This document shows positions 2,579-32,694 of a stretch of DNA of 48,942 nucleotides, piece by piece. The number at the start of each line of letters is the position of its first letter. Positions within the stretch are counted from its first letter, which is position 1. The DNA comes from Anaeramoeba ignava BMAN (Eukaryota; Protista; Anaeramoebae): the NCBI GenBank assembly GCA_028826165.1, contig JAPDFW010000049.1:1-48942 (forward strand), in the 5' to 3' direction. The notes beneath the pieces are model-generated. The model did no database searches, was not told the origin of the DNA, and saw only the letters and a program-made list of their open reading frames with translations. The translations under genes were made by a program, and so were the position numbers.

Positions 2579-4786
2579 ATGAAGAAATTCAAACCTCAAA
2601 TTACAATTGACGGATATCCCTTTTCCAAGAATAGACACAACTCTACTAATACAACTGGTTGGTATAGATGTAGAAAAAGGTGTGGAATGACTGCCAAATT
2701 GTTCTATAATCCCAATCTCCAATGCACTACAAATGGACAGCATAAACCAACTTGCCAAAGGATAAGTCAATCCAGAGAAGTTGCAGATTTGTGGAATTTA
2801 GTGGAGGAATTAGCGCTGGATAATATTTTCACTCCTGATAGAGTATATAGAGAAATGTGTGTAAGAATTGATTCAGATTTAGAAAAAGCTTATATTACTC
2901 CATCTCATCAAGAAGTTAAGAACTATGTAAAGAACATCAGATTGCCATCTGGAAAAAAGAAGAAGAAGAAGATTTCCAGAATTTCAAATCACCAAACTCT
3001 TTTCCAAGACAGATTTTCTCAGGAAGTGGAGCCAAATGTCACCATTTAATATTTATATATGGGCTAGTAGTTCTATGATTTACAATTTAAGCTTGGCTGA
3101 ACAAATTTTCATAGATGGCACTTTTAAAGTGGCTCCAAAAGGATTTAAACAAATGATAGTCGTTATGGCCAAATTACCCAAACTCAATTTGTTTTATCCT
3201 GTCTTATATGGTTTAACTGAAACTAAATCATACCAAAACTACTTAATTTTCTTTGCTCAGCTTCTCGGTCTAATTCCAGATCTTAATCCAGATTATATAA
3301 CGATTGATTTTGAATTGAATTTGAAAAAGTCATTGGATCGGATTTTTCTAACTCAAAAATCATTGGGTGTTATTTTTCATTATTGTCAATGTTTAAATAG
3401 AAAATTTCAAGAACTAGGATTGAATGAACCTATACATAAAAATTAAAAAGTTACAAAAACTACCATTTGTGCCTCAAGAAAATATCTTAGATAAAGTAAA
3501 AAAGCTCAAAAAAAAATTTCCGAATCAGGAAAGAGTGTTTAGATATTTCCGTACAACTTTTATGTCTGATCTCAGATCACAGATGTGGAACTATAGTGAA
3601 CTGCCTAAGGAAATAAAAAGAACCAATGGATGTGTCGAGCGTTATAACAGGAGATTAAATGATATTTTCCCCACATCAAGAACAAATTTGGAGTCATTCT
3701 CTGCGCATCTAGCACAAGAAGAAAAGTATTGGCAAACAAGATGGTCTACCACAATATCGAGAGATGGAAATTTTGATTTCAGTTCTGAAAATTCAAATTC
3801 AAATTCAAATTCAAATTCACTTTTTCTCAATCATCCATATTTAGATCCTGATTTTGAAATTGATGAAGATTTTGAATTTGATGAAGATTTTGAGTTTCTT
3901 TCAGATTCAGATTCAGATTCAGATTACACGAATTCCCAAATATCCAAACAACAATTTGCAAAAGAAAATCAAAACCAAAATGAAAATGAAAAAGAAAAAG
4001 AAAAAGAAAAAGAAAAAGAAAAAGAAAAAGAAAAAGAAAAAGAAAAACTCACAAGAAAAACAAGAAGCAAAACAATATCAAATCAAAAACAAAAACAAAA
4101 ACAAAAACAAAAAGAAAAAGAAAATGAAAATGAAAATGAAAATGAAAATGAAAATGAAAATGAAAATGAAAAAGAAAAAGAAAAAGAAAAACTCACAAGA
4201 AAAACAAGAAGCAAAACAATATCAAACCAAAAACAAAAACAAAAACAAAAACAAAAACAAAATGAAAATGAAAAAGAAAAAGAAAAAGAAAAAAAGAAAA
4301 AGGAAACAGATGTTGGTATTGAGTCTAATATTGATTTTAGTTCCATTTCGAAAACTAATTCAATTTTAAAATCAAAAAAAATTCTACAAAGAAAATCAAA
4401 AAGAATCCCAAAAAGAAATGATGATTACAATTTAAATATTTTGAATTCAAATTCACATTCAGAAAAAGGAAAAAAAAGAAAGCTAAAATTAAAACCAAAA
4501 CCAAAATCAAAATCAAAATTAAAATCAAAATCAAAATTAAAATTAGAATCAAAATTAAAATCAGAATCAAAATTAAAATCAAAATCAAATTCAAATTCAG
4601 ATTCAGATTCAGATTTCAAATTCAAATTCAAATTCAGATTCAAATTCAGATTCAAATTCAAATTCAAATTCAGATTCAAATTCAGATTCAGATTCAAATT
4701 CAAATTCAAATTCAAATTCAGATTCAGATTCAGATTTCAAATCAAGATCAAATTCAAATTCTGAAACAGATTCAGATGAGGATTAA
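2579..4786 (+). pseudogene. MULE (Mutator-like) DDE transposase, frameshifted copy
   Basis: ORFs 2579..3049, 3036..3446 and 3424..4764 join into the protein encoded at 30340..32410. Motifs: WYRCRKRC..H..C finger, FIDGTFK, TIDFE, FHYCQ, RTNGCVERYNRRLN. Frameshifts near 3000-3030, 3345-3375, 3440 and in the tail; some are in homopolymers and may be assembly errors. Confidence 0.85.
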
Positions 4787-8785: not shown

Positions 8786-9575
8786 ATTTATATTTATATT
8801 TATAATTATATTTATATTTATATTTATATTTATATTTATATTTATATTTATATTTATATTTATATTTATATTTATATTTATATTTATATTTATATTTATA
8901 TTTATATTTATATTTATAATTATATTTATATTTATATTTATATTTATAATTATATTTATATTTATATTTATATTTATATTTATATTTATATTTATATTTA
9001 TATTTATATTTATATTTATATTTAAATTTATATTTATATTTATATTTATATTTATAATTATATTTATAATTAAATTTATATTTATAATTAAATTTATATT
9101 TATATTTATATTTATTTTTATATTTATATTTATATTTATATTTAGATTTATATTTATATATTTATATTAATATTTATATTTTTATATTTATATTAATATT
9201 TATATATTTATATGTTTATATTTATATTTATGTTTATATTTATATTTTATATTTTATATTTTATATTTATATTTATATTTATATTTTATATTTTATATTT
9301 ATATTTATATTTTATATTTATATATTTATATTTATATTTTATATTTTATATTTTATATTTATATTTATATTTATATTTATATTTATGTTTATATTTATAT
9401 TTATATTTATATTTATATTTATATTTATATTTATATTTATATTTATAATTATATTTATATTTATATTTATAATTATATTTATATTTATATTTATATTTAT
9501 ATTTATATTTATATTTATATTTATATTTATATTTATATTTATATTTTTATTTATATTTATATTTATATTTATATA
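8786..9575. repeat. (TATATT)n microsatellite
   Basis: Directly visible, ~790 bp, starts exactly at the element end. Confidence 0.95.
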
Positions 9576-10963
9576 TTTGTTTTTGTTTTTGTTTTTGTTT
9601 ATTGAGAAATAATTATTCATTTTTTTAATATAATTTTAATTTCTTTAATTTTTTTTTTGGGATTTGATTTCTTTTTTTAAATTATTTTTTTTTTTGATTT
9701 AAGAATTGAAATAGATTATTCCTTTTTGAATACTTCTGAATCCAAATATTAATATTAATAATAATTATTATTATTGAGATTTGAACAGTAATTTTTTTTT
9801 GACCCCAAAAATTTTGATATGAAAATTTTCAAAAAATTTTCCGAAAAATTTACAAAAAAAAAAAAATGATCGAAAATTATACTTTTTTTTTTTGAGAGTG
9901 TTTCTTATTTGAAAATTATATTAAATAAATGTACTGCAGCAAATATCTTTTGTTCATCTTTTTAAAATTGTCTCTTCTTCTATTTTATTCATTTTCCAGT
10001 TAAAAAAAATCCCAGTCATTTTCGTAAATTCCTTAAGGAAACTATTTTTTCTCCTTGGACTAAATATCTTTTTCTTAAATTGAATATAATTATAATATAT
10101 TATTGATTTCCATTTTATTTTATGAAATAAATCAAAATAGCTATTATTACTTTATGTTTTATTTTTTTATTTTTTATTTTTAATTCAAAACATTTTTCGA
10201 TTTATACTGGCAAATCCTTCAAGAATTTCTTCCATCAATTAATCAAATTGGTTTTTTTCTCCTTTAATCTAGTTCCATGTTTAATAGAATATTTTCAGAT
10301 TAAATAATAATATAAATTCAATTTTTCTTATTAGTTGTTTATATCTACTTTTCTATTTTCTGTATTTTCTGTATTTCATTTTCCATAAATTTCAATTTCA
10401 ACTCTTCCTTATTTCATTTTTTACATAATTAATATCATTCTAGAAACACAAACATAATTTTAATTTCTCGTTTTAAATATTTTTATTTGACTCTTTTATT
10501 CTCTTATTATTTGTTTTTTTTCTATTTATGGAATCCGAATATTTTTTTTCTTTTTTCAAGAATAAGTACTTAAGCAACAAAAGCATTAAAATATAAACTG
10601 TGATAATTAATTTGCTCTTTTTCAATATTTTGTCTCTGTTTTTATTATCGTCTCATAATTAAATATTATTTAGTAATTTTAAAAAAATCATCAAAAAAAA
10701 TTTTTTTTTAAGTTTTTTCTTTTTTTTTATTTATGAACCCTAATTTAAAAACATCATTTTTCACTCAGAAATTATTTCTTTTTGGAATCTATATCCATTT
10801 CAAATGTGGACTTTTATTAAACTTAATAAAAGGGAAAAAAATTTTTTTTTTCATTTTTTTTTTTCATTTTTTTTTTTTCATTTTTTCTTTTCATTTTTTC
10901 ATCTATTTTTCATTTATTTTTTGATCTTTATTTTTATTTTTTCATTTCTCTGCTTTTTTTTTA

Positions 10964-12133
10964 ATGGAAAGACTTGATTTTGCAAATTTGAAATTAAATC
11001 AAAATGATGGGTTTTATTTCCAAGGGAAAAAATATGATATTTTGACAGTTATACAAATTCTTGTCTTTTTAGCAGATATGCTTCTTGAAAATTTACTTCT
11101 AGGATCTAAATCATTGACGTTAAAAAAGTTGGCATCTATATTCCAGAAAAGTACATGGTATATTTCAAAATTATTAAATACACTCAAGCAAACTATTCAA
11201 CAAGAACTTACTGAAATTAAAGATATTTCTCATGAAGAAATGATTGATACTCTTTTTAGATCAATATTTATCTCGATATATAAGATTGAAAAAAGATATC
11301 AAAATAAATTTCAAAAGAAAAAAAGAAGAAAATTGAAAAAAAATCACAAAAAATATATCAAAAAAGAAATCGAAGAGAAGCCTTCCATTTTTCTGAAAGA
11401 AATGAAGCTCAAATTAAAAAATCAATTCGATTTAGATGTCTCGGTTTCGACGTTGTATAAGACTATCCGTTATGAACTTCATTTCACACATAAAAAGTTA
11501 ATGCTCCGATCACCACGGAGATTTCTCCCAGAAAATGAAGAGTTGATTCGTGTATTTCAACAAAAAATGGAAAATTTTTTCAAGATTTACGGTCCAGACA
11601 AAATTATATTTCTTGATGAGACTGGGGTAAATCTCAATTCTGCTTCAAGAAATAAAGGGTGGGCAAAAATTGGAGAGAATTCATTGACAGAGTTTCATAA
11701 CAAAGATAAAAAGCACAGGGTGAATTCTCTCGCTGCTTTTGGAACACAAGGTTTTTTGTGCGTTTCTCATTATGACACAACAATCAAAGCAGAACAATTT
11801 TTGTACTTTATGATAAAAGTCTTACTTCCTGTAGCACCACGCGAATGTGTCTTGATATTAGACAATTGTAGGATCCATCATGCCGTTAATTTAGAAGTGT
11901 CTCGTGCCTTTATTGAAAAAAAAATTTTGGTTGATTACCTTCCACCCTACTGCCCTGAATTTAATCCCATTGAGATGGCTTTTGGAAATGTGAAACAAAA
12001 TTTAAAAAATCATCTGGAGGAATTCAAAGCCAATCCTGTACAAGTGTGGGATCAAATGTTCCAAAAGTTCAATTCAAAGCAAAAAGCAAAAAGATATTAT
12101 ATTGAAGATTATTCTTTCTTAAAAAACAAATAG
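10964..12133 (+). CDS. IS630/Tc1-like DDE transposase (DD36E), 389 aa
   Basis: HTH-like VSVSTLYKTIRYELHFTHKK; catalytic motifs IIFLDETG, VLILDNCRIHH, YLPPYCPEFNPIEMAFGNVK. 36 residues between the second D and E; uninterrupted ORF. Confidence 0.93.
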   Translation: MERLDFANLKLNQNDGFYFQGKKYDILTVIQILVFLADMLLENLLLGSKSLTLKKLASIFQKSTWYISKLLNTLKQTIQQELTEIKDISHEEMIDTLFRSIFISIYKIEKRYQNKFQKKKRRKLKKNHKKYIKKEIEEKPSIFLKEMKLKLKNQFDLDVSVSTLYKTIRYELHFTHKKLMLRSPRRFLPENEELIRVFQQKMENFFKIYGPDKIIFLDETGVNLNSASRNKGWAKIGENSLTEFHNKDKKHRVNSLAAFGTQGFLCVSHYDTTIKAEQFLYFMIKVLLPVAPRECVLILDNCRIHHAVNLEVSRAFIEKKILVDYLPPYCPEFNPIEMAFGNVKQNLKNHLEEFKANPVQVWDQMFQKFNSKQKAKRYYIEDYSFLKNK

Positions 12134-12296
12134 TTTACTTTTACTTTTACTCTTACTTTTCATTTCTTAATCAATAAAATGAATGATTTTCACAACTTTC
12201 TTTATCAATTTGAGGTGTTTTTTTTTCACAGTTTTTTCATTTCAATTTTCATTTTTTATTTCAATTTTTTAATTTTTTACAGTTTTCGAAATTCTA

Positions 12297-15200
12297 ATGA
12301 ATGAACAAAAAACCATAATTCTCCAAGAAAAAGAAGAAATTACTAATGAAGAAGATCTTTCCAATAACCAAAATGAGGAAATTACAGAACAACTCCAAAA
12401 ATCTAAGAATGAAGAAAGTCAGTCAAAAATAAACAAAAAACAAATAAAAAAATAAATAAAAAACAAATAAAAAACACAAGTGATCGTTTTAAATAAAATT
12501 TAATTAAAAATAAACAAAATAAACAAAATAAAATAAAAATAAAAAAAAAACACAAATAAAAAACAAGTGATCATTTTAAATAAAAAAACAATTAAAAAAT
12601 AAATAAAAAAATAAATAAAAAACAAATAAAAAACACAAGTGATCGTTTTAAATAAAATTTAATTACAAAATAAACAAAATAAACAAATAAAAATAAAAAA
12701 AAAACACAAATAAAAAACAAGTGATCATTTTAAATAAAAAAACAATTAAAAAATAAATAAAAAAAATAAAAAAAAAAATAAATAAAAAACAAATAAAAAA
12801 CACAAGTGATCGTTTTAAATAAAATTTAATTAAAAAAATAAACAAAAATAAAAATAAATAAAAAAAAAACACAAATAAAAAACAAGTGATCATTTTAAAT
12901 AAAAAATAATTAAAAAAATCTCAATGAAAAATTAAAAGAAAAAGCAAAATTTTTGTTCATACTAACAAAATAATTATTTAATAGATCAATGTATCAGCTC
13001 CTTCATTTCTCCTGAAAAAAGAAATATAATAATAAATAAGATAAAAACGTTCCAATGTCTTCCCGAAAAAAAGGTAATAACTATAAGGTTTTTGGTATCG
13101 GATGGAATTATAAATCCCAAGTTGAGTATAGATGATTTACTACAATCAATTAAATTTATCAAAGAATTATTCCAAGAAAAAATAATCGATGAAGATATAT
13201 TGGAAATATGTCTAAAGTTGATTTCAAATCTTATAGAAAAATTAACACAAAATTTAGTTGAAAATATGAATTTAGATTCAAATTTTTTAAAATTAGTAAA
13301 TAATTTATGTCTTACTTCTTCTGAAAATTCTTCAATGGTACATCTAAATGAAATGAAATCACAAAGTCTTTCAAGATTAAATTCAATAAAAACAGATGAA
13401 TTTATTCAAAACAAAACACAAATTAAATTTCAGAAACAACGAATTGTAATGAATTCTGAAGATGGTAAAATTATAAAATATGAATATAAATTTTTTTTCC
13501 AATTCAAAATTTAATTATTATTATTTTTCTTATTACACTTTTGATAGATATGATAAAGAATAGCAATAAAAAAAACCAATTATATTTCAATAGTGAACTA
13601 AAATACTTAAACAATCAAATGTTTCAAAATTTTCATATTCCCGAACGGGATATTACTCAAAATGATTTGTATATTGATAAGAAAATAATGATTAATGACA
13701 GATCAATGTTAATAGATAATGTTTCTAAAAATGAAAATGAAAATGAAATTGAAAATGAAAATGAAAATGAAATTGAAATTGAAAATGAAAATGAAAATGA
13801 AAATGAAAATGAAATTGGAATTGAAAATGAAAATGTAAATGAAAATGAAAATGAAAATGAAAATGAAAATGAAAATGAAAATGAAAATGAAAATGAAAAT
13901 GAAAATGAAAATGAAAATGAAAATGAAAATGAAAATGAAAATGAAAATGAAAATGAAATTGAAAATGAAAATGAAAATGAAAATGAAAATGAAAATGAAA
14001 ATGAAAATGAAAATGAAAATGAAATTGGAAATGAAAATGAAAATGTAAATGATGAAGATGAAATTGGAAATGAAATTGGAAATGAAAATGAAAATGAAAA
14101 TGATGAAGATGAAATTGAAAATGAAAATGAAAATGAAAATGAAATTGAAAATGAAAATGAAAATGAAAATGAAAATGAAAATGAAAATGAAAATGAAAAT
14201 GAAAATGAAAATGAAAATGAAAATGAAGATGAAGATGAAAATGAAAATGAAGATGAAACTGAAAATGAAGATGAAGATGAAGATGAAGATGAAGATGAAG
14301 ATGAAGATGAATATAAAACTGAAGATGAATATAAAACTGAAGATGAAAATGAAAATCAAAGTCAAAATCAAAATAACAAAAAGAAGAAGCACAAAAACAA
14401 AAAAGAAAAGAATAAGAAGAAAAATAACAAAAACAAAAAAAAAATTCCAAGAAGAAAAACAAAAAGAAGAAGCACAAAAAAAAAAGTGAAAGTGAAAGTG
14501 AAAAATGAAAAAGAAAAAGAAAAAGAAAAAGAAAAAGAAAAAGATTCAGATCGAGAATCCACTAATGATACTACTGATTATTCTTCTGATAATTCAAATA
14601 GTAGTGATATGGAGATTGATAATGATAGTGAAAGCACAGCTGAAGAAGAAAAAAGTGATTCAGAAAATGATTCAGATGTTGACCTAATTTACCAAGTACC
14701 AAAAAAAGAATTAAGAAAAAAGGGTTCCAGATGTCGCCTATGCGGCTATGTTAAAGAAGAGGGTCATTCTAAAAAATGTCGATGCATTAAACGCATGAAA
14801 CGGAGAAAAACATATTTAATATTTATAAAGCATACCAGAGGTCTCAATTGCAAAGTAAAAAAGAGGCATATCTATCACTTGGCTGTTAAACATATAAATC
14901 ATCACGAATTAGAATCCGAAATTGAATTACACGAGAATAATTGGCCCTTTTATCTGAACAAAAAAAGATCCAAACGAATAGCAGAAAAAAAGATTAAATC
15001 TATGAAAAAGGAAAACAAGATAATAAATAAATCAAAAAGTAATAAAGAAGCTAGAAAAAATCTTGTTTCATCTAGATTCAAATTGCTTTCTGAGGATCCA
15101 TCAGTCAAAACAAGCATATTTCATAACCAAAAAAAACTATCTTCAAAAAAAAAATCAAAAGCAAAAGCAAAAGCAAAATCAGAACAACATAAATTGGATT

Positions 15201-17580
15201 CAAAAAAGAAATCAACAAAAAAAAGGAAGGAAAGACAAAAAAGGAAAAAAGATTCTACTGATTCAGAAACTTTGAAAATCGCAAATCCAAAACGATCAAG
15301 ATCAAAACGAAAATCCAAGCATATATCTACATCTTCATCTGAATCATCTGAATCTTCATATGAATCAAAACCTAAATCAAAATCTAATCTAAATCTAAAC
15401 CTAAATCTAAACCTAAATCGAAATCTGTAGGAAAATCTAGATCTAAACATAAATCTAAATCAAATCACAATTCAAATTCAAAGCAAAAATATAATACAAA
15501 TTCAAAATCAAATTTAAATCACAATAATGAAAATCAAAATTCAAAATCAAAATCAAAATCAAAATCAAAATCAAAATCAAAATCAAATTCCAATTCCAAT
15601 AAAAGATCAAAATCCAATTCAAGTCAAAAAGTTAATTCCAATCAAAAAGTTAATTCCAATTCCAATTCCAATTCCAATTCCAATTCCAATTCCAATTCCA
15701 ATTCCAATTCCAATTCCAAATCAAAATCCAAATCAAATTCCAATCAAAAAGTTAATTCCAATCAAAAAGTTAATTCCAATTCCAATTCCAATTCCAATTC
15801 CAATTCCAATTCCAATTCCAAATCAAAATCCAAATCAAATTCAAGTCAAAAAGTTAATTCCAATAAAAAAGTTAATTCCAATCAAAAAGTTAATTCCAAT
15901 TCCAATTCCAATTCCAATTCCAAATCCAAATCAAATTCAAGTCAAAAAGTTAATTCCAATAAAAAAGTTAATTCCAATTCCAATTCTAATTCTAATTCCA
16001 ATTCCAAATCAAATCCAATTCAAGTCAAAAAGTTAATTCCAATAAAAAAGTTAATTCCAATAAAAAAGTTAATTCCAATTCCAATTCTAATTCCAATTCC
16101 AATTCCAATTCCAATTCTAATTCCAATTCCAAATCAAAATCCAAATCAAATTCCAATCAAAAAGTTAATTCCAATAAAAAAGTTAATTCCAATTCCAATT
16201 CCAATTCCAATTCCAATTCCAATTCCAATTCTAATTCCAATTCCAATTCCAATTCCAAATCAAAATCCAAATCAAATTCCAATCAAAAAGTTAATTCCAA
16301 TAAAAAAGTTAATTCCAATCAAAAAGTTAATTCCAATTCCAATTCCAATTCTAATTCCAATTCTAATTCTAATTCTAATTCCAATTCCAAATCAAATTCA
16401 AGTCAAAAAGTTAATTCCAATCAAAAAGTTAATTCCAATTCCAATTCTAATTCTAATTCCAATTCTAATTCTAATTCTAATTCCAATTCCAAATCAAATT
16501 CAAGTCAAAAAGTTAATTCCAATAAAAAAGTTAATTCCAATTCCAATTCTAATTCTAATTCCAATTCCAATTCTAATTCTAATTCTAATTCCAGTCAAAA
16601 AGTTAATTCCAATAAAAAAGTTAATTCCAATCAAAAAGTTAATTCCAATTCTAATTCCAATTCCAATTCCAATTCCAATTCCAAATCAAATTCAAGTCAA
16701 AAAGTTAATTCCAATCAAAAAGTTAATTCCAATCAAAAAGTTAATTCCAATTCTAATTCTAATTCTAATTCCAATTCCAATTCCAATTCCAATTCTAATT
16801 CTAATTCAAAATCAAAATCAAATTCAAATTCAAGTCAAAAAGTTAATTCCAATTCCAATTCCAAATCAAATTCAAATCAAAAATCTAATTCCAAATCCAA
16901 ATCAAATTCAAATCAAAAATCTAATTCCAATTCCAATTCCAATTCTAATTCTAATTCTAATTCCAATTCTAATTCCAATTCTAATTCCAATTCCAATTCC
17001 AATTCTAATTCCAATTCCAATTCCAATTCCTAATTCCAATTCTAATTCTAATTCTAATTCCAATTCCAATTCCAATTCCAATTCCAATTCCAATTCTAAT
17101 TCTAATTCTAATTCTAATTCTAATTCTAATTCTAATTCTAATTCCAATCAAAAAACTAATTTCAATTCTATTTACAATTCTAATTCAAAATCAAATTTAA
17201 ATCCAAATAATGAAAATAATGAAAATAATGAAAATTTAAAATCAGATCAAAAATCCAATTCCAATTCCAATTCCAAATCCAAATCCAAATCCAAATCAAA
17301 GTCCAAATCAAAATCCAAATCCAAATCAAAATCAAAATCAAAATCAAAATCCAATTCCTATTCCAATTCCAATTTCGATTCCGATTTAAAATTACAAGAA
17401 AAAACCAGTTATGAATCTTCCCTTAATACTGATTACGATTCTGCAGATATTTATGGCCAGGAGTCTGAAAAAGAAAACGAATATCATTCCAGATCACTAT
17501 CAAGAAATGAATCTGCACGTTTAATCGATGGATATATCAAAGACTTGAGGAAGAGGTTTGATACTTCATCAGACATCTGA
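12297..17580 (+). CDS. Spliced cargo gene of unknown function: helical N-terminus, (EN)n acidic tract, CCHC-like zinc knuckle, K/S-rich and (NS)n tail
   Basis: Exons 12297..12417, 12985..13464, 13548..17580. Intron 1 12418..12984 (GTCAGT...TACTAAC...ATAG) and intron 2 13465..13547 (GTAAAA...ATAG) are both phase 1 and restore one open frame. Knuckle CRLCGYVKEEGHSKKC at ~14730-14780. Three 1-bp indels in repeats (~15385, ~16015, ~17031) are needed to reach the C-terminus SARLIDGYIKDLRKRFDTSSDI*. Confidence 0.7.
12430..12915. repeat. Intronic dimeric minisatellite (~163-bp unit x3, made of two ~80-bp subunits)
   Basis: CAAGTGATCGTTTTAAATAAAA (~12477, 12636, 12803) alternates with CAAGTGATCATTTTAAATAAAA (~12564, 12718, 12883). 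Confidence 0.85.
13728..14355 (+). repeat. Coding (GAAAAT)n/(GAAGAT)n microsatellite (EN/ED repeats)
   Basis: Directly visible. Confidence 0.9.
15530..17150 (+). repeat. Coding (AATTCC/AATTCT)n microsatellite punctuated by CAAAAAGTT (NSNS...QKV)
   Basis: Directly visible; follows in frame from SKSKS sequence of the cargo gene after correcting small indels. Confidence 0.85.
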
Positions 17581-19060
17581 TGCTCAGATAAAAAATCTTA
17601 AATTAATTTCCAAAAATCAAACCCACTGAAATCGAAACTGATTTAATCCTTTTTGGTTCTTCATTCTTTTTTTTCATTCTTTTTTTTCATTCTTTTTTTT
17701 CATTCTTTTAAAGAAATTACTTCTTGAAAAATCATATGAATGAATTTCCAAAAAAAAATTAACTTTTTATTTTGATTTCATTAACAATTTTTGAATCATT
17801 CAACAAAAGACTTAAATAAATACAGAAAAGATAATATCTGAGTAAAATTATTTTGATAACTGGAAATTATATTTAAATATTATTTGTTTTTTTCTCATAA
17901 TTATTATTTGAATATTAACTTTTCGAATGAGATATTCTTATAAAAAAGTTAGAAATATGCTAATTGATTTTATTTTCATTTTTAATAGAATAAAATTCTG
18001 GAAAAAAAAACAAGAAAATCCCAAAAATCTTGCCTCTAAGTTGATTTCAAAAAAAAAATCATTTATATCCATTTTTTTTGACTCATTATTTTGGTCTCAT
18101 TTAAGTCTAATATATGATTTCTCCAAATTTGGAACATCTTTTGGATTCTATTTTGGAATATTTCTTCAGATTATCAATTAACAAATTCAAAGATTCTGAA
18201 CTATAGTATTTTCTGCGAAGTATGTCATATAAATAGTATTATATCAAGTTTTTTTTTCTGGAATTGATTGATTTTGCATTGATATACTTACATAATAACT
18301 CAATTTCTTCTAGTATCCATACCAGCATACCATATATATTTTCTTTTATTTTTGCTAATATACTTTTGATGAGTTTTTTTTGAAAGTAATTGATGATATT
18401 TTAATGGGGATTTCCAATCGATTATTTAAACAATCTATTTCTTATCCACATTTTTGTTGAATTACATTTCAATTAGAACTTTATTTATTTAATACCTTTA
18501 ACTGAAGTGAATTTATTCAAAGCTTGTTTTTTTCTGTTTTTTTTTTTCTTCATCAAATGGAGTTTTTTCTCTGATCCAATTTTGATATATCCGCAAAGTG
18601 AACTGAGTCATTGAATAAAAATAAAAATAAAAATAAAAAATAAAAATAAAAATAAAAATAAAAAAAATTTGTAAAAAAATATTTATAAACACAATTTGGA
18701 GGAAAAAATGTTTTGATCATTTAATTTTTATTTATTATTGTCAATTTTTTTTTGGTTTAAAACCCTCAGCTTAATTAAATTATATCATCATTTAATCAAT
18801 AATTTAAAATATGAAATTTGAATGAAATTTGATATTCAATTAATTTTTTCATCTTTCTGCTTCTTTTTTTTTTGTATTTTTGTAATCAAGAATTTACTTT
18901 TTTTCCTCGATTAATTATCTTAGATTATTTTAGTATCCATTTTGTTTTTTGATATAAAAATAAATCAATTCATCCATTAATTACTGAAAAATCAATGAAA
19001 TTTAACATTAGGAGAGAAAATTTTGATTCAATTTGGGAAATAATATCTTTGGTATGATCA

Positions 19061-19348
<288 letters not shown>

Positions 19349-20710
19349 ATCAACATTCTATCAATTATTTCACTTATGCTATTGTTGGGTATCTTCAAAA
19401 ATCTTTCATTAGATAACATAATCCATCAATAAAAACTTGAAAAAAAATTTTTTTTTCGATGTTTGTAACAAATCACTCCGCCGAGTTTTTCGGGAAAATA
19501 ACAAAAAGAAAGATTATTAAAAAATCTATGCTCCTTTTGTTGAATAATATTCATTTCCAGTAATTCATTAATTATCTCCTTTATTTGAAAAAAAAATACT
19601 GAAAGGGGAAAAAGCACCAGATAAAGAAAAAAGAAAGAAACAATAGGTATCAGAGGAAAAAGTATGCACAAAATCTAGATTTAAGAAAAAAAAATTCATC
19701 TCTATACACAAGTTATGAATAAGTTTGTTGGTTATAGAACAAGGCTGTTTTAAGAACGGTATTCATTCATTCATTCATTAATATTCAAAGTAATAAATTC
19801 TTAGATCTTTCAAATATAGGGGGGAAAATTATTAAGTAATTTGTAGAAGTAATCAACTTTTCGATTTTTTTCATTCCCATTAAATATAAATTCATTCATA
19901 GCAGAAATTCAAGGATTTTTTTTATCATTATTTTTTATTGAAACTTGAAGTTATTCAGAAATTTATCATTAATATTGATAACCAAAAATCTGAATTTCTT
20001 TTTTCAAACCGAAACAAATGGAATTTATAAAAGAACTCTCGGGTCTTTGTCGGTATTTTCATGACAAATGATTTGGTAATAACCCAAATTCAAATCATCG
20101 AATTTGGAAAAGAAGAGAAGAAAAAAAAAAAGGAAAATTAAACTAAATTGTAACGGGAAACAAAAAATTTGACACAAACAATATAGAGGATTTTAAACAA
20201 TAAAAAAAAAAGGGAAAAAAGACGAATAGGAAATAAAAAGAAAATTAAAATTTTAACAAAAATAAGAAAAGAATAACAAGAATAGAGAGGAATACAAAAC
20301 CAAAACCAAAACCAAACAAAACTCGAATCAATCTTGAATTTTTCATGTTACTTGATTTCATGATTTTTTGACAAACAAGAAAGTCACCGAAAAATGATTA
20401 TATGGAAAAAAGTTGTTTATATTAATTAAATTGATAGAATAGAAGAAGGAAAAATTTATTGTTTGAATTCTTGCTTACGATTTTCGTTTTAAAATGGTAT
20501 CTATTATCGAATATCAATTGTTTTTTTCTTATTATCTCTGACATTTTATTGATACTATTTCAAAATATTTCTTCCTGGTGCATTTAGTTCGAATACATCC
20601 GGTATGACTTAGCTCATTCTTTTTTTTTGGATTTTAATGAAAACGAGCAAATGAAATTTTTCAAAATAGTATAATAATTAGATTTTTTAGATCGTTGTAA
20701 TTGTCTCATA

Positions 20711-22013
20711 ATTATTATAATAAATATTATAATAAATAATAAAAATAAAACTAAGGAATAAATTAATATTTATATTTATAATAATATTTATATTTGTATT
20801 TATATTAATATTCTTATTATTTATAAATAAATTATTAATAATTAAATTAATCATATATATTATAATAAATATTATAATAAAACTAAGGAATAAATTAATA
20901 ATTATATTTATAATAATATTTATATTTATATTTATATTAATATTCTTATTATTTATTAATTAAATTAATATTAATTAAATTAATCATATATATTATAATA
21001 AATATTATAATAAATAATTAAAATAAAACTAAGGAATAAATCAATAATTATATTGATAATAATATTTATATTTGTATTTATATTAATATTCTTATTATTT
21101 ATTAATTAAATTATTAATAATTAAATTAATCATATATATTATAATAAATATTATAATAAATAATTAAAATAAAACTAAAGAATAAATTAATAATTATATT
21201 GATAATAATATTTATATTTATATTTATAATAATATTCTTATTTATTTATTAAATTATTAATTAATTAAATAATAATATATATTATAATAATATTTAAATA
21301 TTATAATAATTAAAATAAAATAAATAATAAATAATAATAAATAAAATAAAAATTAAAGAATAAATTATTTATATTTATATTATTTATTTTATTAATAATT
21401 ATTATTTAAATTAATCATATATATTTTATTTATATATTATAATAAATAAATAATATTCTTATTATTTATTATTTATATTATTGAATTAAATTAATAATAT
21501 ATATTATAATAAATATTATAATAAAATAAAAATAAAAAATAAAACTAAGGAATAAATTAATAATTATATTTGATATTAATATTTATATTATATTTATATT
21601 AATATTCTTATTATTTATTAATTAAATTATTAATTAATTAAATTAATCATATATATTATAATAAATATTATAATAAATAATTAAAATAAAACTAAGGAAT
21701 AAATCAATAATATTTATATTGATAATAATATTTATATTATATTTATATTAATATTCTTATTATTTATTAATTAAATTATTAAAATTAATTAAATTAATCA
21801 TATATATTATAATAAATATTATAATAAATAATTAAAATAAAACTAAGGAATAAATTAATAATTATATTGATAATAATATTTATATTTGTATTTATATTAA
21901 TATTCTTATTATTTATTAATTAAATTATTTATTAATTAAATTAATCATATATATTATAATAAATATTATAATAAATAATAAAAATAAAACTAAGGAATAA
22001 ATTAATAATTATA
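20711..22013. repeat. ~146-bp AT-rich tandem repeat, ~9 copies
   Basis: Anchor CTAAGGAAT at ~20751, 20883, 21029, 21175, (21352), 21545, 21692, 21843, 21990; middle copies are degenerate. Confidence 0.88.
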
Positions 22014-22904
22014 TCATGGAATTGAATAACTGAATCAGAAGGGGTTTTTTTTAGGTTGAATTAATTTCTAGTTTGAATGAAAAATGGATGAAAAGAAAGT
22101 CATAGTCTAAGAATGGGAGAGTGGGAAAAAAAAGTTAAAACCAAAAAGAAGCGAGTTTGTAACTAAAAGCAAAAAAAATCTTGGAATTATACTCAATTTT
22201 ACAAAAAACGATTTGGTTGTTGATTCTTTATTTATATTGATTATTGAATTATTAGGGAATTTAATATCAACTTCCAAAAAAAAAGAATAAATGAAAAAAA
22301 AAGAAAGAAAAGATGGAGGGCAAAAAAAAGTGAAAAGGGGGTTCTTGGATTTTTATGGATGAAACAAAAAAAATATAATAAATAATAATTGAAAAATAAC
22401 TTACAATAAGTAAAAAATAAAAGAAAAGAAAAAGAAAGTAAATTAAATTGAATTAGAGTAAGTGCGTTTTTTATGAGCTGAAAAAACTAAGAATAAGAAA
22501 AAAAGTACAAAAAAAGTTAGAAGAGTGTGTATAGAAAAAAAACAAAATATTAGAATAAATGAAACTTATCTATTCAAAACCAAGAAAGTAAGGGATATGA
22601 AAATTATTTCAAACATCAAACTGTAAAGGGAACATATGTGGGAATATTGAAAACACAATAAATAAGGAAGAGTAATTGAAAAAAAAAATGAAAAATAATT
22701 TTAATAAAAAAAAAAGCAAAAAAAAATTTTTTTTTTTGAAAAAAAGAAATTGTAACAAAAATAAACATGAAAATAAAATATACATTAGAAGTTGAGTCCA
22801 TTATAAAATTAATATTTTTCAAAAAGGGGTTTTTGTTGATCAATTAATTGATCTTGAGAAAAAAAACTTGCAAAATATGAATTTTTTCATGGATATAAAT
22901 TAAT

Positions 22905-24082
22905 TTATAAAAAATGGGATAATGAATGAATGGAATATTAATAATAAAATTTTATTTAAAATATTATTTGATTTGATTTATTTATATTTATTAATTTATT
23001 ATTTAATCTAAAATTAATATAAATTTGAAAAATTGATTAAATTGGAATTTTTAATTGATTTTTTTGAAAATGAATGTAATTTTTTAAACAACAAATAAAT
23101 ATAAATAAAATAATATTGAATAAATAAAGTATTGTTGAATAAATTAATTTTAAATTATTATTTGATTTGATATATTTATATTTAATAATTGATTAATTAA
23201 TTGGTTGTGTTAATAACAATTATGAAATGAATTAATAGAAATTTATTTTTTTTAAATTTTATTAAAAAGCAAATCAATATAAAAAATGAAATAAAGAATG
23301 AATGAAATATAAATAAATAAATTTCTTTTAAATTATAATTTAATTTGATATATCTATATTTATTCATTCATTCATTAATCCAAAATCAATATAAATTTGC
23401 AAATTTTGTTTGATTGATTTTCCTGTTGAATTTTTTGAAAATGAATGTAATTTTTATCAAAATCAATCAATATAAAAAATGGGATAATGAATGAATAAAA
23501 TATTAATAAGAAAATTTTATTTAAAATATTATTTGATTTGATTTATTTATATTTATTAATTTATTATTTAATCTAAAATTAATATAAATTTGAAAAATCG
23601 ATTAAATTGGAATTTTTAATTGATTTTTTTGAAAATGAATGTAATTTTTTAAACAACAAATAAATATAAATAAAATAATATTGAATAAATAAAGTATTAT
23701 TGAATAAATTAATTTTAAATTATTATTTGATTTGATATATTTATATTTAATAATTGATTAATTAATTGGTTGTGTTAATAACAATTATGAAATGAATTAA
23801 TAGAAATTTATTTTTTTTAAATTTTATTAAAAAGCAAATCAATATAAAAAATGAAATAAAGAATGAATGAAATATAAATAAATAAATTTCTTTTAAATTA
23901 TAATTTAATTTGATATATCTATATTTATTCATTCATTCATTAATCCAAAATCAATATAAATTTGCAAATTTTGTTTGATTGATTTTCCTGTTGAATTTTT
24001 TGAAAATGAATGTAATTTTTATTGAAATCAATTAATATAAAAAATGGGATAAACAATGAATAAAATATTAATAAGAAAATTT
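22905..24082. repeat. 565-bp tandem duplication (2 copies + start of third), built from three diverged ~188-bp subunits
   Basis: The GGGAT of AAAAATGGGATAA falls at 22916, 23481 and 24046 (period 565). Related TTTAAA..ATTT(G/A)ATTTGAT..TATATTTA blocks at ~22950, 23145, 23325. Confidence 0.88.
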
Positions 24083-25198
24083 TCTTTTCATATATTCTTC
24101 TATTGATTAATGAAATGTCCTTTCATTGAAAAATTAATTTAAAAATCAAGTGATTTCGGATATTATTAGAAGGTGAAATTCCCAGTGTAACACGATTTTT
24201 TGTTAATGATTTTTTGAGATGATAAAGGTTTTGAAAAAAATAAAAGAGGATTGAAAAGAACTACGTTGAAATATTTTAATTACATTATGATTAGATCAAA
24301 TATGTTTAAATTTATCAAATGATTATTCTGTTATTTTTTGCAATAGTAAGATAAAATCCAAAAAACAGGAAAAAAAAATTTTTGACAAAATTCTCGGAAA
24401 ACGACCCCAGTCATTTTCGAAAAAAATTTTTGGGGTCAAAAAAAAATTACTGTAAATTAAATTAAATCAAATTAATAATTTTTTTTTTGATTAAATTGGA
24501 AAATATTATTTCAATTCCTTTTTGTTTTTTTTTTTTAAAATTATAAAATTAATAAATTAATAAATTTCTTTTCTTGATTTAATATCCAAAATTTTAAATA
24601 AAATAAAATAAAATAAAATAAAAAAGAAAGAAGAATTTGAATTGAGAATAAAACAAAATTGAATTAAATTTGTAAATCTGAATAAAATAAAACAAAATAA
24701 AAAAAGAGAGAGGAATTATAATTAATTAATTAAATATTAATTTTAATTTTTTTCTTTTTCTTTTTTTTTCTTTTCAAATTTTTAAAGTTGAAAATTTTTA
24801 AAAATGAATGAATTAAAATGAAAATATTTTTTTTTTTTGGAAAATAATTGAATATTAAATTGAATTTGAAATTGAATTTATTTTTTTTTTGAATTAAAAT
24901 AAATTGAAATATAATAATCAAATAATAAATATAAATATTATTTTGATTTTTTTTTTTGGAATAAAAATTATAATTAAAATTATAATTAAAATTTATTTCT
25001 TTTTTTTGATTATATTCTTAATTTTAAAAAAAATTCAAAATTGTTTTGTTTTAATTAATAAAATAATTGAAATAAAAATATTGTTTTTGTTTATGTTTAT
25101 GTTTATTTAAAAATGGAAATGAAATATCTTCTTATAAAATTAATATTAATATTTTGAAAAAGAAAATAAATAAATTAATTAATTAATTAAAAACTTAC

Positions 25199-25294
25199 TC
25201 CACTTAAATTAAAATTAGCTCCATTATCAACTAATAATTTAATCATATCAAATGTAATTGATTCATTCCTACATAAATAATGAACTGGAGACCA
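25199..25294 (-). CDS. Single ankyrin-repeat exon of a host gene ([32 protein letters not shown])
   Basis: 96 bp, open, phase 0-0, bounded by AAAAAG| acceptor and |GTAAGT donor. Matches the ankyrin consensus TPLHxA...xxxLLxxGAxxN. Confidence 0.85.
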
Positions 25295-25641
25295 CTTTTT
25301 TGTTTTGAAATAATAAATTAAATTAAATTAAATTAAATTAATTTCTCTTTAATTTATATTTTAAATAATTTTCTCTTATATTTTTTTGTTATTTAAAATT
25401 AAAAAATTTATAATTTTATTTTGAAATAATATTTTTTTTGTGTTTTTTTGAAAATCAAATTAAAATAATAAATAAAATTACTCTCTAATTTATTATTAAA
25501 TTTAAATTTAAAAAAGAAAAGATTAGATTTAAATTGTTTTTTGTTTTTTGTTTTTTGTTTTTTGTTTTTTGAAAAAAATAAAATAATTAAATTGAGGAAA
25601 TTTTGTATATTTATTAAGATTTTCCATTAATTTCCAAATAA

Positions 25642-25700
25642 TATTTAATTTAATTTAATTTAATTTAATTTAATTTAATTTAATTTAATTTAATTTAATT
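25642..25700. repeat. (AATTT)n microsatellite
   Basis: Directly visible. Confidence 0.85.
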
Positions 25701-25830
25701 AATATATTAAAATCTTATTAAATTATTAAAAGGTTAATTGAAGAGAAATAATAATAATAATATAGATTTATATTTTAAGGTTATGGAAGATAGAGATTAT
25801 AAAGGAATAAATAATAAGATGAAAAGAGGA

Positions 25831-26024
25831 ATATATTTATATTTATATTTATATTTATATTTATATTTATATTTATATTTATATTTATATTTATATTTAT
25901 ATTTATATTTATATTTATATTTATATTTATATTTATATTTATATTTATATTTTATATTTATATTTATATTTATATTTATATTTTATATTTATATTTATAT
26001 TTATATTTATATTTATATTTATAT
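25831..26024. repeat. (TATATT)n microsatellite
   Basis: Directly visible; ends exactly at the GGTAGGGG element terminus. Confidence 0.95.
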
Positions 26025-28329
26025 GGTAGGGGTAAATTTGACCTATTTTGATCTACTGCCTATTTTTATCTACTTTTTTTACAATTTTTTTGATTTTCAT
26101 TTTAAACACATTTTTGATGCTTAATTCTGATTAAAATAATTCTCTTTTCGTCAATTTCCCTTATCACAATTCAAAATATGAAAAATTTATGATCTCTTTT
26201 TTATTTTTTTTTTGGTGCAAACAATTTAGAAGCAAACATAAATAAATTTTATTTATATAATTATTTCTCATTATTATGTTTAATTTTCCTTTTTTTAATT
26301 CAGAATCCTGAAATAATTACACTGAAATATCCATTCCCATTTTTTCATTTTTTTTGATTCTCTTTAAAATATTTTTCTGCTTCATAAATCCTCACTTTCT
26401 TCAAGTTAACTATCTTTTTTTTTATTTAATTTCTTTTTTTCTTATTTCTTCTCCTAATTACTTTTCTCATTTTGTTTTATTTAATATATCTTTTTCATTC
26501 TCAAAAAAAATTCTTTGCTCTTAATTGTTATTCTTTTTCATATTTTTTCTTAAATTAGATATTTCATCTATCTTTGTTTTTGATTATTTTTTATCATTTT
26601 AATTCATTTTTTCTTTTCCAACTCTATTTTCACTTATTATTTTATCAATCTATTCAGATCATTTGCAAATAATATCTCACAAATTTAAGATGAATTTTTC
26701 CTTTATTCTAATAATTCAAAAAAGTTATCAAGTTTAAATTCCCAAAAAGCTCTCAATTTTTTCTTCAAGATATTTAAATCTTAATTTTATGTCTTGCTCT
26801 TTTTAATTTAATTCTCTTTTTCTAAATTTTGATTACTCAGCTCTAAAAAATATCATTTTTTCAATAAAGAAATATCAAGTTTTTTTATTTACTTTTTTTA
26901 AATATTAATTACAAACATGTAATAGTAATTTTGGAAATTCATTTTTGTTGTTTATTCTCTACTTTTTATTGTATTCAAAAAATAAAATAAATTGAGTAAA
27001 TTCAAAATACTCATATTTTCTTTTTTTTGTTGTCTCAAATAAAATCTTAAGTTTTAATATTTTTAATAAATATCTCCCAGAAATATTCTTTTATTATTTG
27101 ATTTTTAATTGAGTTATGTTCCTGAAGCTTTAATTATAAGTTTTATTTTCTTGATTAAATGATATTAAATAATTTCATAAATTATTAAAATATTCTTTTA
27201 TTATTTTCGATAATTAATTCTATATTCATAAAAGTTTTTTTGTAATATTTTTTTATATTTATTTATTTTAGAATGTTTTATTTATTTAATCTTAATTTTT
27301 ATCTTCATAAATCAAAAATTAAATTAAAAAAATAAAATCGGAAAAAAATAATAAAATAAAGATTTTTCTTAAAGTTTATAATTTAAAAGAAATTCCAATT
27401 TAATCAAAAAAAAACTATTTTTATTACGATTGAATGAATTTTAAATTATAAATTTTTTTTATTTAATTATTTAATTCAAAAAATAAAATTGTTTTTTTAA
27501 TTTAAAGTTTCCATTTTTATTTTTTTTGGAGTTTAATTTTCATACACTTTGATAGAAATATAAAGATTTTATCAATTTATAGAATTAAGTTTAATATTAC
27601 ATTCATTATTTAAAAATTCTGAACATTATTTCAAATTAGAGAATTAGAAAGAATTAAATCAATTTTAATCTGAATCAAAATCTAATTTCACTTTTGTTAT
27701 TATTAATTTTATAATTGAATTGAAACCATTTCATTCTTTTGTTTTGATAAATTTGATTTTAATTAAGAAATAAAATATATTTAAAACATCTCTTATGACT
27801 CTCTAATATTTATTTTTTAAATAATATATTAAATTAATCCTTAAATATTTCTTGATTTTTTTATTCCAAATTTTTTTTAAATTCTTTTTTTAAAATTATT
27901 CAAAATATCAATTTTCATTCTGATAAATATAAAAATACCTAAACAAGTAAATATTCTTATTTTAATTAATATCTGAAATCAAATTACAAATTAATTATTT
28001 ATTAAAATTATTAAAAATAGTTGAAATAAATTTATTAATTTTTTTTGATTTCTTTTCAAATTTTATAATATTTAACATTTGAATATAAGAATTGGAAGAA
28101 TAAAAATTAAGATAAAAATAAATAAATGTTCATTAATTATAATTTTAAAATTGAATTTGATTTAATATAAAATATTTATTATCCAAAAAAAGAAAGAAAA
28201 TGGATTTGATTATTTTTTTTTGAGTTATAAAAATATCATAATTTTTGATTTAAATTGAATAAATAATTTCCATTAAAAATTAAATTCAAGTAATTTTAAG
28301 AAAATTGAAATTTTTTTTGATTTTTTTTG

Positions 28330-29452
28330 ATTTTTTTTTTCAATAAAGAAAATCTATTTAAAAATAATTTTATTTCTTTCTTTTTTTGATCTTATTTCTT
28401 TTTATATAAAATCTTTAATTAAAATTAGAAAGTTTTTTAATTATTAATTTTATTTTAAATTAATGTTATTTTATAAATTATTTTTAATTCCAGTTTTTTT
28501 TTCAATAAAGAAAATCTATTTAAAAATAATTTTATTTCTTTTTTTTTTGATCTTATTTCTTTTTATATAAAATCTTTAATTAAAATTAGAAAGTTTTTTA
28601 ATTTTTAATTTTATTTTAAATTAATGTTATTTTATAAATTATTTTTAATTCCAAATTTTTTTTTTCAATAAAGAAAATCTATTTAAAAATAATTTTATTT
28701 CCTTTTTGTTATTTCTTTTTATATAAAATCTTTAATTAAAATTAGAAAGTTTTTAATTATTAATTTTATTTTAAATTAATGTTATTTTAAAAATTATTTT
28801 TAATTCCATTATTTTTTTTCAATAAAGAAAATTTAATTAAAAATAATTTTATTTCTTTCTTTTTTGATCTTATTTCTTTTTATATAAAATATTTAATTAA
28901 AATTAGAAAGTTTTTTAATTTTTAATTTTATTTTAAATTTATGTTATTTTATAAATTATTTTTAATTCCAATTTTTTTTTCAATAAAGAAAATCTATTTA
29001 AAAATAATTTTATTTCTTTCTTTTTTGATCTTATTTCTTTTTATATAAAATCTTTAATTAAAATTAGAAAGTTTTTTAATTATTAATTTTATTTTAAATT
29101 TATGTTATTTTATAAATTATTTTTAATTCCAATTTTTTTTTCAATAAAGAAAATTTAATTAAAAATAATTTTATTTCTTCTTTTTGATCTTATTTCTTTT
29201 TATATAAAATATTTAATTAAAATTAGAAAGTTTTTTAATTTTTAATTTTATTTTAAATTTATGTTATTTTATAAATTATTTTTAATTCCAATTTTTTTTT
29301 CAATAAAGAAAATCTATTTAAAAATAATTTTATTTCCTTTTTTTTTTGTTATTTCTTTTTATATAAAATCTTTAATTAAAATTGGAAAGTTTTTTAATTC
29401 TTAATTTTATTCTAAATTTATGTTATTTTATAAATTATTTTTAATTCCAATT
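28330..29452. repeat. ~160-bp tandem repeat, 7 copies (inverted counterpart of 5537..6515)
   Basis: CAATAAAGAAAAT at ~28341, 28503, 28666, 28820, 28981, 29142, 29301. Confidence 0.9.
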
Positions 29453-30339
29453 TCGTTTTACAATTAGAATCGAAATAAGATGAAAATGAAATTCCAGAAA
29501 AATCAATTTATCAAAAAAATCTATCCCAATTCAAAATGATAAAATTATATAATAGTGAGAGTAATCAATCCTTTTTTTTTCTGTTTTTCCAATGTATCTA
29601 TCATTATTTCTCTTTTCCATTTTTTTTTCTAATCAAATAATTATGGGAAAATCATCTCATCTTACTTTTTACCTAAAATATTCAATTCAATTCAAATCAA
29701 TTTAATTCAATTTAATTCAATTTAATTCAATTTAATTTAATTCAATTCAATTTTAATTTAACTCAATTCAATTTAATTCAATTCAATTCAATTCAAATCA
29801 ATTCAATTCAGTTTAATTTAATTCAATTTAATTCAATTTAATTCAATTTAATTTAATTTAATTCAATTCAATTTAATTTAATTCAATTCAATTTTGAATC
29901 GATTTTAATTGATAAATACGTTTTCCGTTTGTGCAGAACTTATTTCTTTATGATTTTCTCTAGAAATTGAAAAGTCAACAAAAAAATGCAATTAATTGAT
30001 TTCGAGTTAACATAAGAAGAAAAAAAACAAAAGAACTTAGAAGCCTTTTCTTCATTTATTATTATTATTATTGCTCAGTTATGATCCCAATATTTGATTC
30101 TTCTCCTCCTTTAAATTAATAAATAAAAAAAGTGGAAAAAGAAAATTGTTGAAGATGGATTTTATTAATTGATTCCATGAATTGAAAAAAAAAAAAGGAA
30201 AATGAATTTTAAAAAAAAAGGATGAAGAATTATTGATCGAGAATATTTTGAATTTCAATCAAAAAAAAATCGATTAAAAACCAAGAAAATTCATTAAAAT
30301 GAATAAAGAAATTGATTGTGTTCTAAGGGATTTCCCTTT

Positions 30340-32410: not shown

Positions 32411-32694
32411 AAAAAATCTTTTTTTAAATCAAAAATCAAAAATGAAAAATAAAATCAAAAATAAAAAATGAAAAATGAAATTGTTAGAATTGCTTTTTCA
32501 GTTTGATTTGAGAGATATTTTAGTTCATTTTTATTGCAAAATTTGTTTTGTTTGTTTTTTTTTTTAATTTTATCATCATTAACGAAAAAAGGAAAAATTC
32601 AAACCGTTAAATTTCAAATCTTAGTTATTCGAATACTTTAAATAATAAATAATTGAGAATATAATTGAATATAATTTTTAAATTTTGAATTGAT

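Follow-up and report, generated by a model that had tools for sequence, protein, structure and literature searches.

Transposons of the Tc1/IS630 type are the textbook example of a minimal transposon, consisting of one gene and two short ends, and the efficiency with which they transpose falls with their length. This work concerns an unusually large candidate member of the group in the amoeba Anaeramoeba ignava, in which a 14,667-bp segment (positions 9786–24452) of contig C51 carries Tc1-like terminal inverted repeats (TIRs), a transposase gene and a second, spliced gene, here called ORF2. The stretch of DNA analysed, referred to as the window, is the whole of this 48,942-bp contig, and genome-wide comparisons were made within the assembly of 42.8 Mb in 147 contigs.

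Ordinary Tc1/mariner members are 1.3–2.4 kb long, possess one open reading frame (ORF) and are flanked by TA target site duplications (TSDs) (PMC6875036). Incomer, a DD36E group known from animals only, is ~1.2 kb long with a single ORF and TIRs of ~30 bp, and groups with DD34E/Tc1 (PMC6875036). More elaborate designs are found in ciliates, where the TBE elements of Oxytricha and the Tec elements of Euplotes are Tc1/mariner transposons with extra conserved ORFs under selection, one of which has a zinc finger, and where TBEs contain a region of short tandem repeats between their ORFs (PMC4724952). The large elements of the IS630/Tc1/mariner (ITm) superfamily reported so far are Tc1-OP1 at 5.7 kb and Tn630-NC1 at 6.5 kb (PMC11544213). 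The A. ignava genome, which is 80.65% A+T, was assembled from nanopore reads with ABruijn, and the main text of the genome paper contains no description of nuclear transposons (PMC11550330).

The segment 9786–24452 is probably the sole A. ignava copy of one lineage within an amoeba-specific group of two-gene IS630/Tc1-type cut-and-paste transposons. A first-pass annotation, made from the letters of this DNA alone, had described it as an unusually large IS630/Tc1-type element with perfect TIRs, an intact DD36E transposase and a second gene, which the present analysis supports, and further as a cargo-carrying member of a young family, which fared less well in the comparisons given below.

Terminal inverted repeats and sub-terminal boxes

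The candidate element is bounded by 30-bp TIRs with CAGT tips, the hallmark of Tc1-type ends. Perfect CAGT-ended TIRs lying 14.7 kb apart had been reported in the first-pass annotation, and both arms were recovered exactly, each matching the 30-mer that begins CAGTAATTT and identical to one another at 30 of 30 positions. A TIR match at three or fewer mismatches arose in none of 100 shuffles of the window, and at two or fewer mismatches the pair were the only two matches in the 42.8-Mb genome. The likeness between the two ends of the element stops ~30 bp in from the tips. Inside the TIRs lies a sub-terminal 14-mer, CCCAGTCATTTTCG, whose only two exact copies within the 48.9-kb window lie near the left and the right end of the element; two matches to this 14-mer were seen in 0 of 100 shuffles. 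The terminal features are as follows.

9786–9815, + strand: left TIR, 30 bp, tip CAGT, exact partner of the right TIR
10011–10024, + strand: left copy of the 14-mer, 226 nt in from the left tip, a candidate binding box for the transposase
24406–24419, + strand: right copy of the 14-mer, sharing bases with a GACCCCA box whose orientation is opposite to that of the box in the TIR
24423–24452, − strand: right TIR, 30 bp, with TA directly after it

The transposase

10964–12133, + strand: intronless transposase gene of IS630/Tc1 type, DD36E, 389 aa, intact ORF

The transposase matches Pfam DDE_3 (PF13358) with an E-value of 1.6e-25 and reaches 116.9 bits with the NCBIfam IS630 equivalog NF033545 (cut-off 100) over residues 113–354. 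The D(E)...D(N)...NPxE signature is present in the DDE_3 catalytic core, where the triad of D218, D300 and E337 is invariant in 11 aligned relatives. The 36 residues between D300 and E337, which define the DD36E spacing, are kept in all four Anaeramoeba lineages, and the intact 389-aa DD36E transposase described in the first-pass annotation is thereby confirmed.

A structure predicted with AlphaFold2 (AF2; predicted local distance difference test, pLDDT, 81) was compared with known folds using Foldseek, and the closest were Mos1, the catalytic domain of Sleeping Beauty and Metnase. The best of these matches were to Mos1, with an E-value of 1e-7, and to the Sleeping Beauty catalytic domain, with a template modelling (TM) score of 0.61 by target. 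Towards the N-terminus the model contains helices at residues 26–171, and Foldseek aligned full-length Mos1 over 340–390 columns with a high root-mean-square deviation. No Pfam helix-turn-helix (HTH) family was matched in this N-terminal region at E ≤0.01.

Outside A. ignava the best named relatives of the transposase are bacterial IS630 transposases, at only 27–30% identity within the catalytic half. Animal proteins were absent from the results of word searches with the transposase, and outside A. ignava no search detected an ortholog. As judged from its sequence, the transposase places the element in the IS630/Tc1/mariner superfamily.

A spliced second gene downstream of the transposase

The start codon of ORF2 lies at 12297, 163 nt past the transposase stop and in the same orientation. 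The first-pass annotation had described a 5.3-kb spliced, co-oriented gene at this position. Its start was upheld, as was its splicing, by two GT-AG introns that both restore the reading frame in a model read from the sequence. Its extent to 17580 could not be confirmed, and the present model runs to an in-frame TAG at 15428–15430. The parts of the gene and the conserved domain within it are listed below.

12297–12417, + strand: ORF2 exon 1, beginning with ATG, 40 codons plus 1 nt
12418–12984, + strand: ORF2 intron 1, 567 nt, 5' site GTCAGT, TACTAAC branch site and AG, largely made of a 159-bp tandem repeat
12985–13464, + strand: ORF2 exon 2, frame kept, weakly like the equivalent ORF at the C26 paralog
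13465–13547, + strand: ORF2 intron 2, 83 nt, GTAAAA...AG
13548–15430, + strand: ORF2 exon 3, in which (AAAATG)n encodes an acidic NE/DE stretch, followed in turn by the zinc-knuckle domain, a K/S tail of basic character and the stop codon TAG
14687–14989, + strand: conserved ORF2 domain, a C-x2-C-x7-H-x3-C knuckle and, after it, ~70 residues for which five helices are predicted
15431–17580, + strand: (AATCAA)n/(AATTCC)n hexamer arrays, with an open frame at 15388–17577 that is a possible further ORF2 exon

The frame that runs on to 17577 is coded by the hexamer arrays, of which (AATTCC)n is open by construction. The ORF2 exons were searched one by one. Exon 2 is similar to the ORF at the equivalent position of the C26 paralog (L039:9211–9543, − strand; phmmer E 3e-4). 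Two sub-threshold domain matches were also seen in these segments, the exon 2 region (12966–13511, + strand) matching the DNTTIP1 dimerisation domain with E 0.003–0.004 and its C26 counterpart (L039:9211–9543, − strand) matching the death effector domain with E 0.0015; these domains are helical, and the matches fall short of significance.

Conservation and linkage of the zinc-knuckle domain

A profile census of the genome found six copies of the ORF2 domain. Each of the five transposase loci has one of them downstream, in the same orientation. The linked pairs are as follows, each domain being given with its transposase.

C51:14687–14989 (window), transposase C51:10964–12130, same strand, gap ~2.55 kb
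C26:51892–52182, transposase C26:54489–55646, same strand, gap ~2.3 kb
C36:20449–20694, transposase C36:17287–18447, same strand, gap ~2.0 kb
C40:53808–54095, transposase C40:51951–53099, same strand, gap ~0.7 kb
C146:11448–11735, transposase C146:12452–13580, same strand, gap ~0.7 kb

The window domain aligns to that of C26 at 29% identity over 137 aa (BLASTP E 5e-8), and the C26 copy matches the C40 and C146 copies with a phmmer E-value of 7.5e-14. The four zinc ligands are kept in all four linked lineages. The sixth copy (C35:503950–504234, protein P0007, 264 aa) is unlinked, with no transposase nearby, and is the sole copy missing a ligand. In P0007 the fourth ligand is changed from Cys to Tyr and the C-terminal half looks hydrophobic; this protein may be a decaying or co-opted fragment.

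Relatives of the domain were sought widely. An exhaustive search of 1.84 billion representative proteins with a hidden Markov model (HMM) recovered P0007 only, no Pfam family and no word-search match was found, and the ESM Atlas was uninformative. The AF2 model of the domain (pLDDT 74.5) gave no convincing fold match by Foldseek, VIA-align or an atlas shape search. A Pfam scan found no kinase or other Pfam domain in ORF2.

ORF2 is thus a conserved partner of the transposase across four lineages and not a captured host gene, because it is linked to transposases of four lineages that are only 38–45% identical. The description of the element as cargo-carrying is not upheld by this linkage, in which ORF2 accompanies every transposase paralog, or by the rest of the interior, which consists of tandem repeat and unique AT-rich DNA. 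Short copies without cargo, which the first-pass annotation had named as evidence that would count against it, were not among the paralogs, since every one of them carries ORF2.

Copy number and paralogous loci

Including that of the window, the genome contains five transposase loci (n=5), which fall into four diverged lineages each present once or twice. The nearest paralogs of the window transposase share 39–45% protein identity with it, and one of the paralogs has been deposited as "integrase protein-related [Anaeramoeba ignava]". No DNA similarity was found between the window element and the paralogous transposase loci, and in tblastx comparisons of these loci with the element the transposase alone was matched. 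When the interior of the element was compared with the genome, no interspersed repeat was found at ≥80% identity, simple repeats and low-complexity DNA aside.

These results bear directly on the proposal that the segment belongs to a young, multi-copy family of giant elements in which a captured host gene travels as cargo. The large size, the perfect TIRs and the second, spliced gene are all features that such a family would have. The element was found as one copy, with its nearest paralogs 39–45% identical in protein and without DNA similarity, and the genome search suggested in the first-pass annotation, for loci with the same TIRs and layout and with TA TSDs, yielded no further TIR copy. 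Furthermore, ORF2 is linked to every transposase paralog, its only host paralog is one degenerate solo copy, and 44% of the length of the element is tandem repeat. A young cargo-bearing family is therefore considered highly improbable.

The paralogous loci differ in their state of preservation. Those of C40 and C146, comprising transposase and ORF2, share 93–97% identity along 9 kb or more, and the DNA compared (C40:42000–57615 and C146:2500–22499) showed no boundary. The transposase of the C146 copy is frameshifted. At C40 and C146 the two-gene core is flanked by direct, not inverted, repeats of 1–1.8 kb, and the direct repeats of C146 are nested within a second pair of 2.8-kb direct repeats. 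At C36 the transposase is part of an open frame of 700 aa, which exceeds the 389 aa of its relatives, and ORF2 occupies a frame of 620 aa in which a long stretch is NQ-rich. All copies of the transposase are located in repeat-rich DNA.

Long retention of two neighbouring genes could also be the mark of a domesticated or immobile host gene pair, in which a transposase-derived gene and its zinc-knuckle partner were duplicated and diverged as ordinary genes and the inverted repeats of the window are a relic. The four lineages, at 39–45% identity in protein and with one or two members apiece, have kept open frames and their catalytic residues, which implies long purifying selection; the gene order is conserved and no TIRs were seen near the paralogs, all as expected of host genes. 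Such a pair would not, however, be expected to retain perfect TIRs with Tc1-like CAGT tips, nor to show the frameshift of the C146 copy, which resembles that of a decaying transposon. The high identity of C40 and C146 points to the recent duplication of a large unit, every copy is surrounded by repeats, and no ortholog was detected outside A. ignava. On balance, a host gene pair is improbable.

Repeat content of the interior

Tandem repeats account for 6,412 of the 14,667 bp of the element (44%), in agreement with the several satellites mentioned in the first-pass annotation, and the G+C content is 20% for the candidate element and 17% for the window. The non-coding parts are listed below.

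9816–10963, + strand: non-coding leader from the left TIR to the transposase ATG, 1.15 kb, with no ORF and no transposase-like or ORF2-like remnant
17581–24422, unstranded: non-coding tail, 6.8 kb
19062–19349, unstranded: (AATA)72, in the tail
20708–22014, unstranded: satellite of 146–149 bp, in the tail
22906–24088, unstranded: 565-bp repeat with a 193-bp sub-period, in the tail

Outside the transposase and ORF2, no gene could be recognised in the interior, which is made up of tandem repeat and of unique, AT-rich sequence. The tail gave no Pfam match above threshold, and a profile search of the remaining interior in all six frames found no second transposase or ORF2 remnant. An 89-aa frame at 17912–18178 (+ strand) has a sub-threshold match to Pfam Transposase_1, a partial DDE domain of mariner type (E 0.046), which is probably due to chance, although the frame may be left over from some other element within the tail. 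The element is bloated by repeats and not loaded with captured genes, because 44% of its length is tandem repeat.

Flanking sequence and the insertion site

9575–9785, unstranded: left flank, a truncated member of the interspersed repeat LF, adjoining (ATATTT)n at 8789–9574
24453–26024, unstranded: right flank, a 5'-truncated member of the ~1.6-kb repeat RF, ending in (ATATTT)n at 25832–26024

Each flank of the element belongs to a repeat family with copies elsewhere in the genome. The LF copy at C114 is 94% identical to the left flank up to window position 9784, and the homology to LF, in the C114 and C67 copies alike, ends at 9784–9785. The RF family has at least eight copies at 87–96% identity, which start with (TAAAT)n and end with (ATATTT)n. 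Other RF copies include C25:5833–7415, C57:2031–3610, C42:16940–18491 and C108:191789–193395, with no coding capacity evident. The right tip of the element abuts the (TAAAT)n stretch of RF, and other RF copies read straight through that point. Both TIR tips accordingly behave as real element ends, because the homology of both flanking repeat families stops there. The right junction looks canonical, with a TA within (TAAAT)n; at the left, LF paralogs have no TA at the break point.

Several observations weigh against reading the segment as a mobile two-gene transposon. The flanking dinucleotides are AA on the left (...GAA), as the first-pass annotation had cautioned, and TA on the right, so that there is no TSD. 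The LF copies at C114 and C67 extend beyond the break with sequence that has no counterpart on the right side of the element, after 24452; five RF copies extend to the left with sequence that has none before 9786, and the missing halves of LF and RF are nowhere in the contig. An empty site joining 9785 to 24453, the allele that the first-pass annotation had proposed to look for, could not be rebuilt from paralogous flank copies, as the flanks are of different repeat families that are contiguous in no paralogous copy. The 10-kb surroundings of the four transposase paralogs yielded no TIRs, whether by exact 13-mers, BLAST, a 22/28 mismatch scan or motif regular expressions. ORF2 is without any relative of known function. 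Finally, the element is present as a single copy, so neither its boundaries nor its mobility can be confirmed by comparison of copies.

The copy is accordingly read as rearranged or recombinant and not as lying in a simple insertion site, because its flanks are of different families, no empty site could be rebuilt and the left flank lacks TA. Movement of the 14.7 kb as one unit, as the first-pass annotation had it, finds no support at the junctions, given the missing TSD and the two flanking repeat families.

The same junctions would fit two TIRs with separate histories, in which a right-truncated element (left TIR, transposase and ORF2) and the solo right end of a lost copy bracket several kilobases of non-element satellite, and the 14.7 kb never moved as a unit. 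Each flank comes from a different repeat family and is truncated exactly at a tip, no TSD is present, and the 6.8-kb tail has no element-specific feature except in its last ~50 bp. Against this, no second copy or fragment of the TIR or transposase of this lineage exists in the assembly, the tail holds no interspersed repeat or host gene like those around the element, and the switch from unique to repetitive sequence falls exactly at both tips. Separate histories of the two ends are thus judged unlikely, and a single element whose surroundings were later altered is preferred.

Contig context

The element lies between the arms of a large inverted repeat. The contig is a near-palindrome, in which 1–9001 matches the reverse complement of 25807–40160 at 92–96% identity. 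The arms are two inverted copies of a very large Mutator-like element (MULE), with PF10551 matches in the ORFs at 3036–3446 and 30896–32410 (− strand). This MULE family has four copies, and the shared tip ends at 8787 and 26025, in each case adjoining (ATATTT)n. The possibility that the TIRs are the inner edge of the contig palindrome was rejected, as the MULE arms end at 8787 and 26025 and the DNA between the arms and the TIRs is unrelated.

R9 nanopore reads were the input to the ABruijn assembly (PMC11550330), and the contig is a 48.9-kb near-palindrome; the inverted ends might therefore in principle be the product of a chimeric or fold-back join within repeat-rich sequence. The big arms are, however, only ~94% identical, and represent two copies of a four-copy MULE family with its own ends elsewhere. 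In addition, 785 and 1355 bp separate the TIRs from the ends of the arms, and the sequence flanking the TIRs is unrelated. Logan contigs of four DNA runs (X1–X3 and X5) contain 28–86% of the sampled words of 10964–15430, the region of the two genes; those of run X4, from a second study, contain 58%, and none of these runs is listed as RNA. An assembly artefact is accordingly given the lowest probability of the explanations considered.

Other features of the window were recorded in passing. The remaining MULE copies (C107:201689–205287 and C132:114657–117792) each have a diverged inverted arm 9–12 kb away. A tandem duplication is present at 35460–37659 / 37529–39734, and the right MULE arm contains a 616-aa ORF at 33039–34889 (+ strand) with weak HTH-type Pfam matches only. 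The matching stretch of the left MULE arm (~1–1770) has no ORF of ≥120 aa. Rfam and tRNA scans of the whole window found nothing.

A model for the element

In the model proposed for this two-gene transposon, the transposase would bind the TIR together with the sub-terminal GACCCCA/CCCAGTCATTTTCG boxes and would move the element by TA-targeted cut-and-paste. ORF2 may, we infer, supply the element with an accessory protein of its own, one with affinity for nucleic acid or chromatin. The size of the element would have arisen by in-place expansion of micro- and minisatellites and not by gene capture. Insertion would have occurred at a TA within the (TAAAT)n of an RF repeat, with the left flank replaced at a later time, either through a deletion or other rearrangement with its end point precisely at the tip or through recombination with a sister copy since lost. 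In this way, replacement of the left flank would explain both the missing TA and the mismatched flanks.

A bolder proposal, which we regard as possible though doubtful, is that the zinc-knuckle protein is an obligatory second component of an undescribed two-gene branch of the IS630/Tc1 group. Its role might be the loading of the transposase on extremely AT-rich ends that are filled with repeats, or protection of the element from silencing, and such a partnership would let the elements stay mobile at ~10 times the usual size of the superfamily.

In a deep-branching anaerobic protist, an orphan zinc-knuckle gene has been kept beside a transposase across four or more ancient splits, and internal satellite DNA amounting to many kilobases has been tolerated. 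If ORF2 is a cofactor, this would provide a compact system for asking what accessory proteins do in cut-and-paste elements, and a possible route to Tc1-type vectors with large payloads. The locus also carries a caution for annotation, namely that in a genome of 80% A+T 'giant cargo transposons' can be mostly expanded repeats and their 'cargo' a core gene of the element.

Comparison with known systems

Of the traits of the superfamily, the catalytic triad and the TIRs were found at this locus; TA at both ends was not, nor was evidence of transposition in the form of copies with different flanks or an empty site. The window element resembles ordinary IS630/Tc1/mariner members in its DDE_3 core, its score above the cut-off of the IS630 model, a fold like those of Mos1 and Sleeping Beauty, CAGT TIRs of ~30 bp and the TA at the right junction. 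It differs from them in its length of 14.7 kb, its conserved and spliced second gene, the lack of TA on the left and its single copy. With Incomer the element shares the 36-residue spacing between D and E and TIRs of ~30 bp, whereas it is 14.7 kb long with two genes, and no sequence kinship was seen in word searches.

The large ITm elements reached their size by other means. Tc1-OP1 is large through a transposase of 1,155 aa, whereas the window transposase is of ordinary size, and Tn630 is a composite in which two IS630 copies surround passenger genes, whereas the window element has no second IS copy. The ciliate elements carry accessory ORFs, a 22-kD ORF and a 57-kD zinc-finger/kinase ORF, which were compared with ORF2 by description only. 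TBE and Tec elements have TIRs with telomere repeats and number tens of thousands of copies, whereas the window element is present as one copy with two genes, no kinase and a different knuckle. By analogy of layout, in which a Tc1-type transposase is accompanied by a further conserved gene, the ciliate TBE and Tec elements are the closest analogues in design to the element of A. ignava.

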